In this document: in pieces, positions 25,974 to 51,958 of the stretch | Layout of the letters: each line of letters begins with the position of its first letter | Numbering within the stretch: position 1 is the first letter of the stretch | Source of the DNA: Takakia lepidozioides | Lineage: Eukaryota > Plantae > Bryophyta | NCBI GenBank assembly: GCA_030704615.1 | Contig: CM060731.1 | Coordinates: forward strand, 88,784,001 to 88,848,000 | Direction of reading: 5' to 3' | DNA: 64,000 nucleotides | Notes under the pieces: model-generated | What the model was told of the DNA's origin: nothing | Databases searched by the model: none | Seen by the model: only the letters and a program-made list of their open reading frames with translations | Position numbers and translations under genes: made by a program

Positions 25974-27549
25974 ATGCCAATGGATAGATCTTCCTCCTTT
26001 ACAATCTCTTCCCCGCAACCCCCCCGGCAGACCAGTCACCCGTTTTGTCTTCTGGGGTGGATTCTGTATTTCCACATAGCTGTGGTGTCTGTTCGATAGA
26101 GTTACCTTCAGTCTGTAAGGGAGCTTGTAACGCATTGAGATCGAAGCTCCGCAGCACGAGCAATTGCAGCTAACTTGCTAACCAGGCGTTTATGCAAGTC
26201 ACGTGATAACGCTAACTTTCCATTGTTTTCCATTGTAGACGATAGTCCAAAATACTAGACGGTTGGGGAATAGAAATTTGGGAGGCATTCTGCACAGAGC
26301 ACCGCGCAATCCACTGCATGCAGCAGTATGTGAACCCTTCTACTTCTTGAGTTGTGAGGAAGTGGAGGCAAGGATGTGAGCAAATTCAGCATGGATGATT
26401 TCTACACTCTGCGGGTGACTTGGTATGGTGCTCCTGTTGTCTCAATATTTTGTCATTGAAATTCTTGTCCTTATTGTCTGGTTGAAGGTCAGGTTGGTAT
26501 TGAGTTTTCAATGGTTGATTGTTCAGAGAGAGGGAATCTTATCTTTAGCCTCTACTACATAACCCAACCAACCTAGACACTTAGGACTGGAGCTGCTTAT
26601 TTGGTGAGCATTTGGCGAGGTTCTTGCTTATGGTTAGGCTGGCTTGACCCTATCTACTTGGGATTTGCTGTAAGGCACATGTGGGTTATATACCTCATAC
26701 CCCGTTCTCAGATGCAGGAGTGCAAGTTACAGGCTACTGTAAGCTTGAAGAGAAATACACGGAGGTGTCTGTTTCCTTGCCCAAGGTAACAATGCTATGA
26801 TTGGATTTGTAGTAGTTCTGCATTGGGAAAAAATGTAGAGTCTTCTGCTGAGTTTGTTCCAGTCATTCTCACTACTTATCATGTCCTTCATTAAGCCTAT
26901 CAACTATGTACACTTCTAGAAGATAAAGAGATTGATCACTTCAAGTGAAAAATGGAACTTTGCTTTATTTCATACCGGTTCTTGGTGAGTAAAGTTCTCA
27001 CATGAAATGAAATGTTGGGTATGATCAAATTATAAACCCCATCACATCTCTGAGAATATGTGACATTAATAGGTTGTGTTGGCAACCTAGTTATGTCTTG
27101 CAAAAGCAATTATCATGACAATCCTCAGCATTTCCAACAATCTGCACTCTGTTCTTGGCAGTAGGATGGACACAAGCACCGTGCCTATGGCAGAGGATGG
27201 AAGACCTGTCTAATGATCCTGTCATACCCATCCTCCTTGCCTTGGCTTTGATTGCAGCCATCATACACCCCAACAAAACAGTGTAGTCACTGTCATCTGC
27301 AGCCAAGGTCAAGCACAGTTTTCCAAAGAATGTGTCTAGGTCTGAAAGAGAGCAGGTCTGAAAGAGAGCGGTTAAGCTTGACTCTTTGTATTTTCCCATG
27401 CTCCGAGTTGCACCTCTGGCTCCCACTCAAGGAAAGCAGCTGCTTGCTGTGAGCAGTCAGTTGCCGAGAGTCAGTCACTCTTGTGATCCAAGTGCTTGGT
27501 CACAGCTAGAAGCTTTTTAATGAATAAGTTTTTTTTACTGTATAGCATC

Positions 27550-30500
27550 TTATCTCGGCTCAACGGTGCTCATGTAACTAGCTGTGTTAGTTAAGCTTGA
27601 TCCGGAGTTATAGGTTGAGCCTTGTGAATAATCTTTACTGAAGGGAGATGAGGAAGTTGATGTGCCACCACGACCTGCATAGTGGCGTATTCTGGGCTTG
27701 GAGATCTCAGGCATGTCAATCTCCGCCTCTCCGGCTAGCATTGTGACCACCCGTGACATTGTTGGCCTCATTGTAGCCACTGATTGTGTGCATAACAGTG
27801 CAACATCTATCACCCTCAAAACTTCTTCCTCGGAGATGGGGCCCTTCAGAGTGGGATCAAGAAGTTTTTCCAGTTTTTGATCTTCATGCAATTGCCAGGT
27901 CTGCAGCAAGAAGGTTTTTGGCGCGTAGTTAGCACTGTACTGTTCACCATTCAAAATTATCATTTAAGAGAATGTACTCATGAGACTCCGTTTGCCGTAG
28001 CCTTGTACACATAGACCCCGCCCCCATGGATGGAAATATCATTTAAGAGACAAACACAGAGATTGCTTTGAAATTGAGCTAACTGAACCAGAATCTACAA
28101 ACAGCTTCCACATCGTGCAATATAACATTGGACCCCAGCATACTTGATACATGAAATTCCTGCTTGTAGGAAAGAGAAGTCATACCCAATCTAGGAGATA
28201 GGCCATGTCTGTGGGCAAACGAAGGTCCAGATTGCCCCGGCCACTTACAAGCTCCAGTGCCACAATGCCAAAACTGAAGACATCTGCTTTCTCTGTGAGT
28301 TGTCCCCTCATGGCATACTCCGGTGCCAAATATCCACTTCACAACACCCCACAATGCAAATGTCAAGGCCCCTCATTGCTTCTCTGTGGTTCTTTGGTCT
28401 ACTTTTGTCCCTTGGACTTCCCAATACTTACTGACTGTTCCCTTCTTTCACTCAAAAAGGTTACTTTGTCCCTCTTTTTTCTTTCCCCTGGACCTTACAA
28501 AGTTCCTTCTTTCTTTCTTCTTACTTCCCCTGCAGTTTCCTGTTTTCCTTCAAGTTGCTAAGTTGGCAGTGCAATCACAGGAGACTAGAAAGGTACTAGT
28601 GCAGTAGAAAGTTAGTAACATTCTGTTTTCTATTGGCTTTCTAGTATGTTGGCAAAATGTGGCAGGAATGTGGCCAAAATGTTGTAAGCTGTCTGACTGC
28701 TACTTCCATTGCAGGTAAACTCTACCATTGGCCAGGGTGGAACAAGTATATCACAGGGAATTTCAACATGAAGGGCCAACAATCTTTATGCGGTGAAGGA
28801 ATGTGGTATATAATGCAATTTGTTTTGTATTATCAAATTGGATTCGACTTTTTCCAGCATTTTCAGGTCCAAATAACCAGGGATTATCTGTTTGCCTACC
28901 CGCTTCATAGAGTTCAGAAGAAACTAGGTGACTTGGAGCCTCTCGTTCACATCTCTCATCGAAAGGTGTTATCCTATAATGCATATTTCTGTACCTTGGC
29001 ATCAAATCACCTGGGTAAAACTTGTTTCAAGTTCAGCAAAGACATCAAATGAGAAAAGGCGCAGCTTACACTGTCCCAGCAACACGGGTGCTGATATGGC
29101 TCTGATCATCCAAAAAGAAACGGGCCAACCCAAAATCAGCAATTTTGGGATTGAGATCTTTGTCCAGCAAAATGTTGCTGGCTTTGATATCCCGATGTAT
29201 TATACGTGTCTGACAGCCCTCATGCAGATAGGCAAGACCACGAGCTGTTCCAACCAATATCTTTACTCGTGTCGGCCAATCCAAATGCAATCCTTGCCCT
29301 GCATCTGCAAGGACATGTACATTTAATTGGATCAGGTAAACTCTGTAAAACATTTTGGTGTTCCATCACCCATATCACTATGATTATATCTTTCCAGCCA
29401 CCTGATCGCTTTCTCCCTGCAGCAGTCCAAATAACTGGGAAGGAAAAAACATGTGGCTCCTCTCTCCTCAAAGCCATCTGAACTCGATGGTGTGCACAAG
29501 AAATCAGATCAGCAAGTAGTGATAAAAGGAACTGTTGCAGGGGACCTTTACTGTTCAGTACCCATCTTTAAGAACAATGAAGCTATTTCACAATATAAGC
29601 TTCCCTAATTTGAAGGCAATCAAAGCAGTTGACCAGGTTGGCTAATGGGTCTGGAGCAACTGCGGAAATGCACTTTCAGCATCAATCAGTGGACTCAAGC
29701 ATGAGAACCTCCTTGGCCTCAAGTGTGTTTCTGGGGTACTGACCCTTCGAACTCACTGTGCCTCTTCCCCTTGCCCCATTTCCTGCATGTGTTAGGCTTC
29801 AGGATTAAAATGGTGAGAGTGGTATTACCAAACAAGGCCTGATTGAGGCTTTTATTTTCAAGGTACTCATAAACTAGCAGCCGCTCTCCTCCTTTGAGAC
29901 AGCAGCCCCGCAGTTTTACAAGGTTGCGGTGCTGAACGCCTGTGATAAGCGTGACCTCATTCAGAAACTCTTCCTGTCCTTGCCGTGAAGTTTGAGAGAG
30001 CTGCTTGACTGCCACCTCAGTACCATCAGGCAGCACTCCCTTCATCACCAGATTTGCAAAAAATGAGACACATGAATTTAGGTTGGGTATAAGAACAACA
30101 CGAATGAGAGCGCGCGTGTCTGAAAGAGGGCTGCAGAATAGGGAGGAAAGCAAATGGGACACTCACAGGAAGGTGCAGATGCATGGTTGTCTGCAAAGAC
30201 ATTTCCAACTTTGAAGAACTTTAGAGCAACCTCTCAATAAACCCTCCAGGTTGTTATAGATGTATATAGTACTGATAACTGATACCTAGATTGTATTAGA
30301 AACTGAGAAGCTGTTGGTGTGCAGCATTGCAGAGTCGGATGGTATTATTTACTGACAGGCTTAAGATTGTACCATACCTTAAAGACTGAACCAAATCCAC
30401 CTTCCCCAAGCTTGCTCCCTGAATGGAAATTTCTGGTGGCATTTTTTAGCACAGTGTAGGTGAAGAGGGTCGGTCGTCCTTCAATCTTCAGAATGTCTGA

Positions 30501-31736
30501 TCACATACAGATCCAGCAATTTATCATCTTTCCTCGGAAACTACATGCCATGCATAGATACAGGAATTGTTCAATGCGACTTTGGCTGTCCATCACATTC
30601 TGATTGCATGACAATACTGGATGGAAGAAAGACATTTATAGAACAGGTCCCAATTTTCACAGATGTGTATGAGAGGTAGGAAGGAGGTGGTAGTAATGCA
30701 TGCATGTGTGTACCATCTCGATCTTGACTTGAGGCTGGACACCTCCAAGCCTTCTTCCTCCTCCGACAAGCTAAGAAAATACAAAGAGCCAGAGCGGCAA
30801 TCACAACGCCCGTTATACTGATGGCCACTATTGCAAAAATGCCTTTAGGTGCGCTTTTGGAAGCTCGCTCTGCATTAAGGAATTTCACCCCCACAAAGAA
30901 GATCACTGACCAGGTTTGTGAAGCATTTTTACAATTGACTTGTGACCAAATACGCCATATGCGTCCACCTTCTGGCTATAGAAAGCACTCTGGAAGCCTT
31001 AAACAAGTCACAGAAATCTACTACGACCGAGGAAGGAGACCGAAGGGCTAAAGGAACAGAAGTAGAACAACGCGCAGTCGAACCACAGACCCACACACGC
31101 GAGAGAGAGAGAGCGGGCAAGGAGGAGTATTGGGCGGCTTCAAAGGATTGAAGATCGTGTATGTAATAAGGGTGGTGACATACTGAAACTTGACAATCCA
31201 GAAATTTTGCATACAATCTGTGTATCTGAGCTGCCAGAGTTTCCCGATCGTGTATTTGTGCTTACGAGACGTGTACCTTGCAGAGAGGGAGTGAGGGGAG
31301 CCCCGCAAGAGCTGTTACCGGGCGCCAAACCCAACAGGGCGGGGCACACGCTGCAAAGGTCGGTAGTGAGCTTGCAGTAGCCAGGCATGGCTTCCTGCAA
31401 GACTGGCTTAACGACGTCCGGCGGGTAGAAGGTAACGTAGCAAAAACAGCCTAAAGTGTCGCGCGCGACCTTCTGCACCGCTGAACAACAGTTAGCAGGT
31501 GGGCGTGGAGGTCCCTGTGATTGGGTACCCATCAGATATTGTAGGCATGGAATCAACTCTTTCATGCCATCGCTGCACAATGGTGTACTCATGTCCAAAC
31601 ACGGTTTGCCTTTCTTGAATGGGAAGCTGCAGTTGAGACCTGGCATCGGCGCAGCTGCGCCCAGCTCACTGAAGATTGCTAGTACCACCACTACTGCTAC
31701 CATCCTTGCAACGGCCCTCATTGCTATTGACACCAT
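27550..31736 (-). CDS. Receptor-like kinase with nsLTP-like eight-cysteine ectodomain and LRR-VIII-2-like RD kinase; 7 exons, 560 aa
   Basis: Exons 31736-31277, 30869-30714, 30496-30378, 30039-29829, 29304-29070, 28336-28186, 27900-27550; all GT-AG, phases compatible, 1683 nt open. Signal peptide, C-X9-C-X18-CC-X12-CFC-X21-C-X6-[34 protein letters not shown]. Confidence 0.9.
27958..28050 (-). mobile_element. 65-bp retroposon 3'-end insertion with 14-bp TSD in an RLK intron
   Basis: tatcatttaagaga at 27958-27971 and 28037-28050 flanks atgtactcatgagactccgtttgccgtagcctt...gacccc. Confidence 0.8.
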
Positions 31737-33730
31737 TCTATCTGCCTATCTTTCTACCTAGAGTCCACTCCCACGGTTGCAGTCGATCGGATCTCACTTT
31801 TGGAGAAGCTATGTTCGCGCACAGCTGCCCTCCAAGAACACCCGCCGCAGCCGTGCAGAACGTACCATGGGGAGCTCAAGGAGCAATGCGGCACTGTAGA
31901 GCTGGGAGGTGAGTAACCTGGAGGTGGACAGGCGAGTAAGATATAGATGCTCTCCTACTACAAACTCCACCAGTCCTGAATGATCTCACATAGAGAGAGA
32001 CAAACAAATGAACACGCATAGGAAGAAGAAAAATCTTTGCAGAGAGTGGCAGCCCCCTTGACCTTGCAGCGAACGTCTACTGCCAGACCCACCACACCTG
32101 CCTCCTCGCCCTGACTTTCCATCAGTTTCCAAGAAAAGTGTTATTAGTGTGAACAGACTTGAGCTTGCAGCAGGCAAGTATCTCCACCTGGAGTTGCAGC
32201 CCTGTAGGCAATACAGTACTCCATGCAGCAGTTGTCGCACCAGCTTTTAACTAGTGACTGTAAGTGCATGTGCGCAAGGTATAACTTAGTTGGGTATTGT
32301 TTGAATGCAAGCCCTGCCTTCTGCAGCCATTCTGGAGAGCAAGGATTGCATGCAATAATGTTGTAGCGTGCTGCATTGATGAAGCCTGGGCCACCATCTC
32401 ACGTCCGGACGGTCTTCACGCGCTAATATAGGGATGGAGAACTGTATACAATCCAATTGATTACTCCCGCCTCTTCAACTTTCTTTCCTTTTCTGTTTTC
32501 AAAGTTACTATCACACTAAAATCAGAACAAACAAACAAGAAACCTTGAATCCATCATGTGGGTGATGGCCTGGGTCATCACTGTCAGGACTAGAGAATTT
32601 ATTGCAAGGGAAAATTTGTGGAGAAGATCACCATCTCCAGCGTCTGAGGCAAATAACTGGCCCTCGATTGGGCATCACACAAATGAGTTGATGTCGGCAT
32701 CGAATCCATTCCCAGTCAATGACTTTCCCTTTACCCATGTTTTGCCCATCATGTCTGGAATCTTGTTTTCAACGCCGCAGATTGCCCGTTAGCAACTCGC
32801 TTTACATGAGGTAGGCAACGGTACACTGTATGCCGGCCTTTTAGGTGCAGTCAAGTAACCATCTGTCTCCTTCACTCCTTTTGCAGCTCGAGAACCATGC
32901 GAGAGGAACAACCAATCTCTGAGGTCTGGTTTGCTTGACCTGGTGTGTGTTGTCAGTCCAGTGGATATACTTCCATAAACGAAACGAAACGAAACATGTG
33001 GTTGTTAATCTATCAGGGCCAGGATTTCCAGTGATACAGCTACTTTGGAAGTGCTATTTTCCAGCTATCTTCCAACTTTTTGAGCTTTCCATTGGTTTCC
33101 ATGAACCCTTGGGTTTCCCAACCATTCAATGCATTCACACCAGATGGAAAATTGGAAAAACATTTCCACTCAAATAGTGCAGAGATACTGAAGTAAGAGG
33201 TACACCAACTAGGAGGGCAAATAGCCAGAAATGATTTGGACCAGAACAAATGCTAAAATAGTCATGAACAAACGATGGTCCAAAAGCAGCTGTCTTCTCC
33301 CTACATGCATTTATTGGAGGAGGAAAAGAGTGATAAGTTCTTCCTACTTTTGTTTTGAAACCTTGCAGACCTGTTTTGTGAATATCTGATGTCAGGAAAA
33401 TGAAAAGTTCGAAAACCTGTCATATTCATTTGCCCCATTTTGCTTGAAAGGTATCTGGAGATCAATCTCAGCAAGGCAGCAGAGGCTGACCAGAAAACGC
33501 CTAACGGAAATAAGCAGGTAGGGGAGTGACTGCTGAGACTTAACAATCCTGCTCATGTAATAAGAACCTTTTGTGTGATACACCTCTCAATTTACAGACC
33601 AGTGGCAGAAGCAGCACACTCAGCCAAGCTCATCAACCTAGCTACCACTGTGATTGCAATTTTACATCAATTGGGATGTGAACAGTCAGAACTATTTGAG
33701 GAATTTGAGTGGAGGGACGAAATGGTAGTG

Positions 33731-48149: not shown

Positions 48150-51100
48150 TTAGACCATTTCATTACTGTAATCTTCTCTCACACTGTTTAATCGTCTACT
48201 CCACTCACCATTTGAAAGCTGACTAGATGACTCAACCTCTGGTGAACCCTCAGCAACTTGTGGCATGGTGTGGTTGTTGCTGTTCCGACGCTTGCCCAGC
48301 TTGCACAAACTTTGGACCACTGTACGTATTCTAGGTCGCCTCCTTGCTTGCTGCTCAACACACTTGTAGGCCAGTGCTGCCATTGAACCTAAATCTTCAG
48401 TGTTGCATTTTCCAGCCAGTCTTGAATCGAGTAACTCCCCCCAGCCGTCCTTTCCATCTACACCCATGGCTGCCTGCACTCCATGATATCAAAGCAGTCA
48501 CCCCCATGCCATAAACGCTACTCGTAACTTCCCACTATTCCCGGACACCAATATGATATAAACAGTTCCCAAAAAGTGCTGCATGGAACAGGCACAGACT
48601 AACATGAGGCAGACAAGATGCATTAGGAGATCAACGTACGAGATGGACATAGTCCATTAGTCCCTGTTGTGGGTTGCGGGCAGTTATGAGCTCAAACAGA
48701 AGCACTCCAAAGCTGTACACATCACTTTTTTCCGTGAAAATGTTGCTGGTCACATATTCGGGGTCCACATATCCAAATGTTCCCCTCACACCTGATGCTG
48801 TGGAATCTGTACTAGCCTCTTTGGATAGTCCAAAATCAGCCACCTGTAGCCACACCATTCTGTCATTAATAGTGTAAGAATAAAATGCGAAACAAATGAG
48901 ATCTAGGGCATTTCAAGTACATCACACACATTATCATGCAGCTCCATTAAGAACTACAACCAAGGGCAAGAGAAACTACCCAAGAGAAATTAACCAACTT
49001 ACCCTAGCCGTCATTGAGTCATCCAGTAAAATGTTTGCCGATTTGATGTCGCGATGCACTACTGGTGGTATTGCCTGCGACCCAAAATCCAGCTCCCTTA
49101 GTAATACTACGGCTGTAAGGAAAAACGGGTAGTAGGGCAGGATACTTGGTCTTCAAGACTTGACATAAGTAAAACTGCTACCTTCACCTGGTAATGAGAG
49201 CTCATGACCCAGGTGTTCTATTGGACAGTACCACAGCCTCATGTGAGAGCCTCGCAATACCTCCTGTCAGGTGCTCATATGTTCAAGCCAGCAATAAGGG
49301 ACTTGGGGGAAAAACCGATCAACATAAACCAAAAGAGAAACCCCTACTCCATGCAAGAATTTAAGGGGAAGGCTCCTGCATGGGGGGCCCTGTCTGGGCC
49401 CATTGGTTGCAAGCTACCTCAATGAAAGCTGCTTCTGCCTACAGAGAATAAAAATTTACTTCTGACCAAGAGTTTGTACATGTTGAGGGCCTCACACATC
49501 TGCATTCTGAGTAGAGAGAGATAATGTAACATGCCCCAACACAATGGTGTTACAAATCAACACCAGGAAGGGTGTTAACGTAAAGGCTAATGTCTAATGG
49601 CACAAGTCTAGGAGGCAAAAAGGGACATACTCCTTCATGAAGATATTCAATTCCTCTTGAGACATCTTGAGCTATACGCACCCTCCGGTCCCAGCTCAGA
49701 GGCTCATGTTCCTCATCTGTGACAATTTCCCCATATTAATTACAAGACTACTCAAGTTTTCATCAGCACTGAGGCAAACACAAGAATCTTACCCTCAAAG
49801 CACAAGCTGTCCATTCTACTGCTCAAAACACTCTCTACACACACCGTACTCCACATATGCTGATTTTGCACAACTGTAAAAGCTCCTATGTTGGACCCTA
49901 CTGACCCATTTAACAATCCAGAAAAATATCTCCAACACATTTTCCAACATCTTCCACAATTCCATTGCCTCCTTGATGCTAAAGCTACCACCAGGAAACT
50001 AATAATGCCAAATAAGTTCTCAGCTGTTTCCAGGTTCTTACTGTATCCTTCAGGTTGTAATTGCATCAAAAAATATGTGCTCTGAATTTGACTAATCAAC
50101 AAGTCCTTGCCTTCACACCCCTGATCTGCACTCATGGTAATAAACTTGTTCATCTACAGCCTACAAGGGTGCTCCTGGCTAGAAGTAGTGCATGTGCTGC
50201 TCCAGCTGCCGTATAAATGTAGATAAGTCTAAAGGTGAAAATGCCCACAAACTGAACACACCATTTAATCGCTGAGCCAGACTCCCGTGACTCATATACT
50301 CATACACCAGCATACGCTGGCCACGCTCCTCACAGTAGCCCACCAAGTTCACTAAATTGCGATGATGCAGCCTTCCCAGCAGCATTACCTGCTCCAATAT
50401 CCCATCCTCATTTAGCCTTCCTCTTGCTGTGTCATCAAAATCAGAACGAGCTCTTGCATAAGCATTCACGTTGATGTGCTAAAAATTGATTAAGTAATGT
50501 AAAGTTTGGTGCTCTCTCCCCCACCTTAATGGACTTTTTGATTGGAGAACCCATTGTCCACCCAATTTGCCTTCTCTGCCAAATAGAAACCCCCAAGGTC
50601 TCTGAAACTAATGATAAGCGGAAGACTCTGGTAATGACGGGGACCAGGGTGCTGCTAGGCCACCCAGCTGTAAGTCGGAACAGGGCCACCCAACTGCATC
50701 GGCTGAGAGAACTTTACAATGCCTCATGCCCTCAACAGAACATGAGTAGTGAAGGCAGCAGCAGAGTGGCAACAACCACTGAGGCCCTTCTATCCTAATC
50801 TGCCTTTTCTTGATGCATCCATGTTGCTGGCACTAAGCAGCTGTATCCCACCTACTGATCTTCACTGAGGATAATAAGCAGCCAACCTTTAAGATGCAAC
50901 CACAAATATGCTTGGACGCAAAGGATTTCCAGGGTTGATTGGGCAGGAACAACTTGCAAGCTAAGGTGGAGTGGACATGCTCTCGTCCTAACCCAATTCA
51001 AACCTTCAAAAGAGATGCCATTGGGGTTCAACTGACGAGCAAAATCCACTATGCCCATTCGACAAAATTTTGGATCATCCAATTCTTTTGGTTCCTGAAC

Positions 51101-51958
51101 TGAGGTTGCAATGCCCTGTACAAATACGCGTATGACCTCAGATATTTCCTGGCAATTGCTAAGCTACTCCATAAGGACCTACTGGCACCCATGAGAAAAC
51201 CAAGAAAGGCAGTCGAGGCATCCTTCGCATGCCAAGAACCGCTGAGTGCTTGATGAATGTCCTGTGTCCAAAAAGTATTACCAGATATGCAATGAATTCA
51301 TCATTCTGCTTTCCACAGTCTGTGTGAAAGAAAAGTGGGATTCACAGGGCGCAAAGGGAAGTACCTCTGTCTGAAACTCTTTGTCACCTTGCTTCGAGTG
51401 ATGAGCCAAAACCTTCACAGCAAGAATTGTCCCAGACGGCTGCACAATGGCCTTGTACACCGGCCCAAATGCACCCTGTCCCAACATTGCTGTGAAATTG
51501 TGAGTTGCCTTGTGCAGCTCCCTGCCACCCGGATGAGCATCATTTAGCCTTGCACAAATTCATTGACATGGAATGATGGTGCAAAAGCAGGCCACTTACT
51601 TGTAAGTGAACTTGGTGACACCAGACGAGGCCGGAATGAGGTTGTGACCACCCCACCACGATCTCAACAAGCCACCAGGATGTGCATGCAGTGGATCGTG
51701 GGCAATCCCACTGTCAGACATGAGGGTGCTCGAGTTGACACCATTGACGCGGATTGGCAGAGCTAAAGCCCTGCGATCACCTCCACCCTTCTCAAGCCGG
51801 TTTCGCCGCACTCTGAAGCATAGAAGGATGCATCCAGCTAGAACCACTCCTATGAGCACCCCAATTGAAATGCCTACAATTACCCCCACGGGCAAGCCAT
51901 TGCTCTTGCTCGCTGCAGAAGTGGGGGGAGAGGACACAGATTTTGTGTCCGCTGCCAT
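48150..51958 (-). CDS. Calcium/calmodulin-regulated receptor-like kinase (CRLK1/2-like), multi-exon
   Basis: N-terminal [24 protein letters not shown] motif, [72 protein letters not shown]. Confidence 0.92.

Follow-up and report, generated by a model that had tools for sequence, protein, structure and literature searches.

Gene structure and transcripts of the locus

The stretch of DNA analyzed here, called the window throughout, comprises 64,000 nucleotides of Takakia lepidozioides (assembly GCA_030704615.1, contig CM060731.1, positions 88,784,001 to 88,848,000), and coordinates are given as positions within it. On its minus strand, from 31736 down to 27550, lies a gene of seven exons that encodes a receptor-like kinase (RLK) whose predicted ectodomain resembles a nonspecific lipid transfer protein (nsLTP); we refer to this layout as LTP-RLK. 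Read on the minus strand, with borders checked by script, every intron is GT-AG, and the joined exons form a coding sequence of 1683 nt (560 codons plus stop) with the terminal stop only and no internal one. The incoming phases of exons 1 to 7 are 0, 1, 1, 0, 1, 2, and 0. A preliminary description of this DNA had joined an LTP exon, a transmembrane (TM) exon, and five kinase exons into one stop-free coding sequence of this length, with a phase-1 GT donor at 31276 and a phase-1 TM exon at 30869-30714; the identical model was recovered here, including these borders and phases.

Exon 1 (31277 to 31736, 460 nt, 153 codons plus one base) contains the start codon, the signal peptide, and the whole ectodomain, and ends in phase 1 at a splice donor GT in 31276-31275. 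It is separated by intron 1 (30870 to 31276, 407 nt, phase 1, GT..AG) from the TM exon, exon 2 (30714 to 30869, 156 nt, phase 1 at both ends), which encodes a short linker, the TM helix, an RRRKK stop-transfer signal, and the start of the juxtamembrane region. The helix is a hydrophobic stretch of 26 residues at about 30766-30843 (mean Kyte-Doolittle value 2.81 over 19 of them), and RRRKK is followed by approximately 330 more residues of kinase. Exon 3 (30378 to 30496) carries the juxtamembrane motif ILKIEGRP and the glycine loop GEGGFGSV; exon 4 (29829 to 30039) the VAVK lysine, the alpha-C glutamate, and the hinge; exon 5 (29070 to 29304) the catalytic loop HRDIKASN, DFG, and the start of the activation segment; exon 6 (28186 to 28336) GYLAPEYA and the subsequent C-lobe helices; and exon 7 (27550 to 27900) the end of the C-lobe, a serine-rich tail with the terminal motif VEPR, and the stop codon. 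Pfam kinase matches (Pkinase/PK_Tyr_Ser-Thr) are located on exons 4 to 6, with E 1.8e-12 for PK_Tyr_Ser-Thr on exon 4 and E 3.6e-15 for Pkinase on exon 5. As had been claimed before, all catalytic motifs (GxGxxG, VAVK, HRD, DFG, and APE, the last within APEYA) can be read intact in exons 3 to 7, which makes this an RD kinase. The protein has the RLK/Pelle layout, namely a predicted signal peptide, an ectodomain, one TM helix, and a cytoplasmic kinase with intact motifs.

The ORF (open reading frame) containing the TM exon has no in-frame ATG and opens with GTG; the TM exon and the kinase therefore have no start of their own there and need an upstream exon. The absence of any other ectodomain exon between the LTP exon and the kinase, also part of the preliminary description, was borne out: tblastn of the window with two ectodomains of LRR-VIII-2 RLKs, which contain leucine-rich repeats (LRRs) and malectin domains, found no LRR or malectin coding sequence (best E 0.04), and exon 1 has no LRR or malectin match in Pfam. 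A scan for bacterial promoters and terminators upstream of the ATG found nothing, a type of scan irrelevant to a plant gene.

Contigs of the public run X1 were aligned to positions 27400-31900. They match the exons without mismatch and join 31277/30869, 30714/30496, 30378/30039, 29829/29304, and 28186/27900, that is, five of the six introns are skipped, with CT..AC ends on the plus strand corresponding to GT..AG on the strand of the gene. The joint between the LTP and TM exons, at which the preliminary description had proposed a transcript check, is crossed exactly by a contig of 398 letters, of which 317 lie on exon 1 (31277-31593) and 81 on exon 2, with nothing between them. Five exact intron removals can only stem from spliced RNA, a processed copy being far less likely. 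Taken together, the data show one gene here, intact and transcribed.

The ectodomain module

The predicted signal peptide (31653 to 31736, about residues 1-28) contains a hydrophobic stretch with a mean Kyte-Doolittle value of 2.35 over 19 residues; its cleavage site is approximate and was placed without a prediction tool. Exon 1 encodes 12 cysteines, at positions 36, 46, 54, 64, 83, 84, 97, 99, 121, 128, 131, and 144, and two N-glycosylation sequons. Eight of the cysteines form the motif C54-X9-C64-X18-C83C84-X12-C97FC99-X21-C121-X6-C128, the spacing given in the preliminary description. The four extra ones are C36 and C46 upstream of the core, C131 at its end, and C144 downstream. The nsLTP-like core itself extends from 31344 to 31583 (residues 52-131) and is supported by Pfam LTP_2, a family profile, and an AlphaFold2 model.

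On exon 1, two Pfam profiles exceed their cut-offs: LTP_2 (PF14368) with E 4.5e-8 and 33.6 bits (cut-off 22), and Tryp_alpha_amyl (PF00234) with 22.9 bits (cut-off 21.7). When 1.84 billion representatives were searched exhaustively with HMMER, 41 relatives of the ectodomain emerged. In the 34 family ectodomains that were aligned, nine cysteine columns are invariant, including the CC and CXC pairs and the last three core cysteines, and two motifs are common, CFC.VTFYPP and CN.T.DLC..CP, of which the window protein has its own version. Run against the PDB, a profile built from this alignment has no matches other than nsLTPs and DIR1, the best of them at E 2.2e-5.

The AlphaFold2 model made with the alignment is all-helical with six helices, at a predicted local distance difference test score (pLDDT) of 86.5 and a predicted template modeling score (pTM) of 0.78; its core helices exceed pLDDT 90. 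The top 14 Foldseek matches are nsLTP1 structures, with a probability of about 1 and TM-scores by target of 0.5-0.56. VIA-align superposed 81 of the 93 residues of maize nsLTP1 (1mzl) with a Z of 7.3 and a root-mean-square deviation of 3.4 A; its top 15 are all nsLTP1, and below them come 2S albumins and unrelated helical proteins at Z of at most 4.5. The earlier proposal of an LTP fold thus agrees both with Pfam, where LTP_2 lies above its cut-off, and with the model, which matches nsLTP1. Sequence and predicted fold together support an nsLTP-like 8-cysteine module as the ectodomain.

Family members, kinase lineage, and other features of the window

A representative protein of 602 aa, P0004, combines LTP_2 with a kinase, and further members were found by searching with its ectodomain, then with its kinase region, and by reading clusters. 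The same layout occurs in Sphagnum fallax at three loci (BDL97_07G004700, 13G005100, and 14G003900, on chromosomes 7, 13, and 14), in S. magellanicum (CY35_07G010800), S. jensenii, S. troendelagicum, and S. compactum, in Physcomitrium patens (P0128; UniRef A0A7I4...), in Ceratodon purpureus (KC19_8G059000; P0132 with two LTP modules and P0134 with one), and in the liverwort Calypogeia fissa (P0127), where Pfam is silent on an ectodomain that aligns with the family. Their database names go no further than "hypothetical protein" or "protein kinase domain-containing protein". Per-exon tblastn recovered the exon order of the window gene (LTP, TM, and kinase exons) in five more loci, L001, L004, L006, L007, and L009, of which L001, L007, and L009 are environmental contigs. 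Because the same architecture is found in Sphagnum, Physcomitrium, Ceratodon, and Calypogeia, it belongs to an old bryophyte family and is not a recent shuffle in this genome. LTP-RLKs are, to judge from the encoded proteins, a conserved family of bryophytes, including mosses and at least one liverwort. The uniqueness implied in the preliminary description does not hold, given at least three loci and at least five species in Sphagnum alone, the other three genera, and a listing of LTP_2 by metaRLK.

The exons of the window gene were searched singly, and the gene was placed by its per-exon identities. Its kinase exons are 64-75% identical to those of the family proteins, with the Sphagnum type closest at about 74%; exon 3 is 67-79% identical to its homologues, and identity with Sphagnum LTP-RLKs reaches 90% for exon 4 and 94-96% for exon 6. 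The ectodomain is 28-51% identical to those of family members. The window gene has the LTP exon, the phase-1 intron, the TM exon, the kinase exons, of which family members have five to six, the ectodomain motif, and the STVEPR end that characterize the family. These identities (kinase 64-75%, ectodomain 28-51%) mark it as a family member from another bryophyte, in sequence terms a distinct orthologue or paralogue.

Several variants of this layout were observed. In P0132/L006 of Ceratodon and in P0131, P0135, and L009, two tandem LTP-like modules occupy the first exon and are followed by the same TM and kinase exons. There are also relatives lacking a kinase (P0017 of Sphagnum balticum, P0014, P0021, and L008); some of them have the format of a receptor-like protein, in which a TM helix with a short basic tail follows the LTP-like module, and one is an LTP exon whose downstream 8 kb contain no kinase. 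Such proteins may be partners or decoys of LTP-RLKs. A conserved motif, [IVL]EPR, forms the extreme C-terminus of nearly all LTP-RLKs; the window protein ends in STVEPR (27553-27567), and LRR-VIII-2 relatives in ...EGR or ...PR. At the Calypogeia fissa locus L004 (6630-6860), an extra phase-0 intron interrupts the catalytic loop region (HRDVK|ASN) that is not present in the window, in Ceratodon, or in the Selaginella LRR-VIII-2 gene.

After the family itself, the nearest named kinases are annotated as "probable LRR receptor-like kinase At1g56130/At1g56140" and contain LRR and malectin domains. The kinase exons of the window gene are 57-62% identical to LRR-VIII-2 RLKs, and the kinases of Sphagnum LTP-RLKs are 60-65% identical to them; the preliminary description was right to liken the kinase to At1g56130. 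A maximum-likelihood tree was built from 40 kinase domains, drawn solely from public full-length proteins. The core LRR-VIII-2 clade has a support of 100/92 and the LTP-RLKs lie outside it; in 200 of the 200 bootstrap trees examined, a single branch separates the two groups.

Intron positions, which are more informative than the tree, were compared among gene structures from Calypogeia, Ceratodon, and Selaginella that had been derived by matching each protein exactly to its locus. All six introns are common to the window gene, Calypogeia, and Ceratodon. The first, in phase 1, follows the LTP module, and the Selaginella LRR-VIII-2 gene (P0153/L005) has a phase-1 intron at its malectin/TM border. 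Four of the five downstream introns also match in position and phase: the juxtamembrane phase-1 intron before ILKIEG (in Selaginella before LKHLEG), the phase-1 intron after ALF (after VLL), the phase-2 intron in AGT|x (the same in Selaginella), and the phase-0 intron after LLDW (after LLEW). Only the phase-0 intron in GSVFK|G is specific to LTP-RLKs and absent from Selaginella. This pattern supports, at the level of gene structure, an ectodomain replacement at a phase-1 intron, of which it is the expected trace. Most likely, the family goes back to a single event in which an LTP-module exon took the place of the LRR-malectin exons in a gene of the LRR-VIII-2 type at that intron. Phase-1 exon shuffling had been proposed in the preliminary description; the swap fits the intron positions and phases shared with Selaginella, and what changes is its age, since the family is an old one in bryophytes.

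Other features of the window were also recorded. A second, unrelated kinase gene lies on the minus strand at 48150-51958. Its ATG ORF (51596-51958) encodes a TM helix preceded by a very short N-terminus and followed by a basic stop-transfer signal, with kinase pieces at 51278-51487, 50179-50469, 48631-48858, and 48150-48479 and no LTP-like exon upstream; it may resemble the CRLK1-type RLKs with short ectodomains. Within intron 6 of the LTP-RLK gene, about 40 nt (27967-28006) are matched at 90-95% by dozens of unrelated transcript contigs from both runs, with a summed depth of up to 367; this is a short dispersed repeat. In intron 5, the central part of an X1 contig of 2973 nt aligns to 138 nt (28844-28981) with 10 mismatches, and the plus-strand ORFs 28657-29052 and 28928-29326 overlap this stretch, probably a piece of some transcribed repeat or transposon.

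Putative function and comparison with known systems

The best overall explanation, and one we regard as very probable, is that the locus encodes an intact, expressed receptor kinase with an LTP ectodomain, a member of a conserved bryophyte family with a putative role in sensing hydrophobic ligands. According to this model, the signal peptide would lead a disulfide-locked, all-helical nsLTP-like module with 12 cysteines to the cell surface, where one TM helix and RRRKK would tie it to a cytoplasmic RD Ser/Thr kinase of LRR-VIII-2 lineage, giving a type-I single-pass receptor. A putative hydrophobic tunnel in the module may take up a lipid-like ligand, such as a fatty acid, a monomer of cutin or wax, or a lipid of microbial origin, and occupancy by the ligand would alter receptor pairing, so that the kinase would be switched on by trans-phosphorylation, as in other plant RLKs. 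The two halves of this model differ in strength. We hold the structural half, that is, gene structure, splicing, domain identity, fold class, and the conservation of architecture and intron positions, with high confidence, whereas the lipid ligand is a tentative proposal, more doubtful than probable. The furthest-reaching version, in which an ancient moss and liverwort family descended from one ectodomain swap directly senses cuticle- or microbe-derived lipids at the surface, seems to us rather unlikely as it stands.

A number of points speak against this explanation or parts of it. Intron 5 (29070/28336) is the sole intron without a bridging contig among those listed, the RNA nature of run X1 is only guessed, and the contigs are compatible with rare isoforms or with a minor isoform that retains intron 1 and would stop at 31140. 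The fold match is moderate (Z 7.3, TM-score 0.55), and helical models often reach such a Z by chance, as the tool itself warns; the fold assignment therefore leans on sequence and structure jointly. Resolution along the backbone of the kinase tree is poor, with a support of 46/87 for the branch that separates the LTP-RLK and LRR-VIII-2 groups, and for this reason a single origin, like the direction of the swap, is only inferred.

Other explanations concern the gene as well as the ligand. Two neighboring genes could have been misjoined, one for an LTP-like protein, either secreted or anchored, that reads through to 31140 and the other for a kinase that starts independently; the unspliced ORF at 31140-31736 is indeed open for 198 aa, and LTP-TM relatives without a kinase exist, for instance P0017 of Sphagnum balticum. 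However, the transcript contig crosses 31277/30869 exactly, which contradicts an independent LTP protein ending at 31140 as the main form, the TM exon has no in-frame ATG, the phases match, and at least four other genera have the joined layout in their annotation or coding sequence, so that we give this explanation hardly any weight. Equally improbable is a decaying lineage-specific chimera or a functionless pseudogene, a reading contradicted by the intact frame, the presence of all kinase motifs, the spliced transcripts, the invariant core cysteines, and the retention of the family in mosses and a liverwort.

A far more serious alternative, to which we assign nearly an even chance, accepts the receptor and questions its ligand: the LTP fold may serve as a compact disulfide scaffold that binds a protein, a peptide, a wall polymer, or a co-receptor instead of a lipid. 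Cysteine-rich plant ectodomains offer a caution in this respect, since the names of domains such as DUF26 in the CRKs (cysteine-rich receptor-like kinases) did not predict the ligand. The ectodomain evolves fast (28-51% identity) in comparison with the core kinase exons (about 90%), as would fit a surface tracking variable partners, it has extra disulfides and an N-terminal extension that are not found in classical nsLTPs, and members with a double module occur. On the other hand, every solved relative, by sequence or by fold, is a lipid binder (nsLTP1 or DIR1), and the core helices are predicted at pLDDT above 90. It is the fast evolution of the ectodomain and its extra disulfides that keep the scaffold explanation alive next to a lipid-binding receptor.

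A search of the available literature library found no paper on the LTP-RLK family, its distribution, origin, or function. The metaRLK preprint (10.1101/2023.12.21.572927), which covers 528 species, names "LTP_2 for lipid transfer" among RLK ectodomain Pfam domains, in one line that gives no taxa, and RLPredictiOme (PMC9603095) mentions in passing a "probable lipid transfer-RLK" class. The statement of the preliminary description that LTP is not a standard class of RLK ectodomain was therefore fair, although the line in metaRLK means that the architecture had already been catalogued.

Plant RLKs are classified according to ectodomain type, and a lipid-transfer fold is not among the classes given in textbooks. 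With the present locus the LTP-RLK layout is real at the transcript level, and what was a one-line database entry becomes a defined family. It also offers a testable idea, a hydrophobic-ligand pocket that would be wired directly to a kinase. If this is true, LTP-RLKs would be the first class of receptor kinases to perceive a ligand by the nsLTP fold, and they would link early cuticle evolution to signaling. Physcomitrium is a transformable model that has members of the family, so a role of this kind in the monitoring of cuticle or microbial lipids by bryophytes can be addressed directly.

Among known systems, the closest are the annotated LTP-RLKs of Sphagnum, Ceratodon, Physcomitrium, and Calypogeia. 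The window protein shares with them the architecture, exon order, intron phases, the CFC.VTFYPP and CN.T.DLC..CP motifs, and the ...EPR end, and differs in sequence, at identities of 39-45% (ectodomain) and 64-75% (kinase exons). LRR-VIII-2 RLKs resemble the window gene in kinase sequence, in the phase-1 intron between ectodomain and TM helix, in four of five downstream introns, and in a related C-terminal ...xxR; in place of their LRR and malectin ectodomain, the window gene has a single LTP-like module of 125 aa, and the phase-0 intron in GSVFK|G is an additional one in the kinase region of LTP-RLKs.

The module has in common with nsLTP1 and DIR1 (LTP_2/Tryp_alpha_amyl) the 8-cysteine motif, Pfam scores above cut-off, and a predicted helical, disulfide-locked fold, at 17-24% sequence identity to solved nsLTPs. 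Whereas nsLTPs are small, soluble, secreted proteins of 7-10 kDa, the module is the TM-tethered ectodomain of a 560-aa kinase, and it has, beyond classical nsLTPs, an N-terminal extension of about 25 aa with two cysteines, a C-X2-C at the last core cysteine, and one cysteine near the membrane. LTPGs are membrane-attached, with LTP_2-type modules that have a hydrophobic residue in CXC, as in the window module; an LTPG ends in a C-terminal signal for glycosylphosphatidylinositol (GPI) attachment, while the window protein continues instead into a TM helix, RRRKK, and a kinase. A precedent for the perception of lipid-like ligands is LORE (SD-1-29), the S-domain RLK for medium-chain 3-hydroxy fatty acids, whose ectodomain (B-lectin/S-locus/PAN) and kinase subfamily differ from those of LTP-RLKs.

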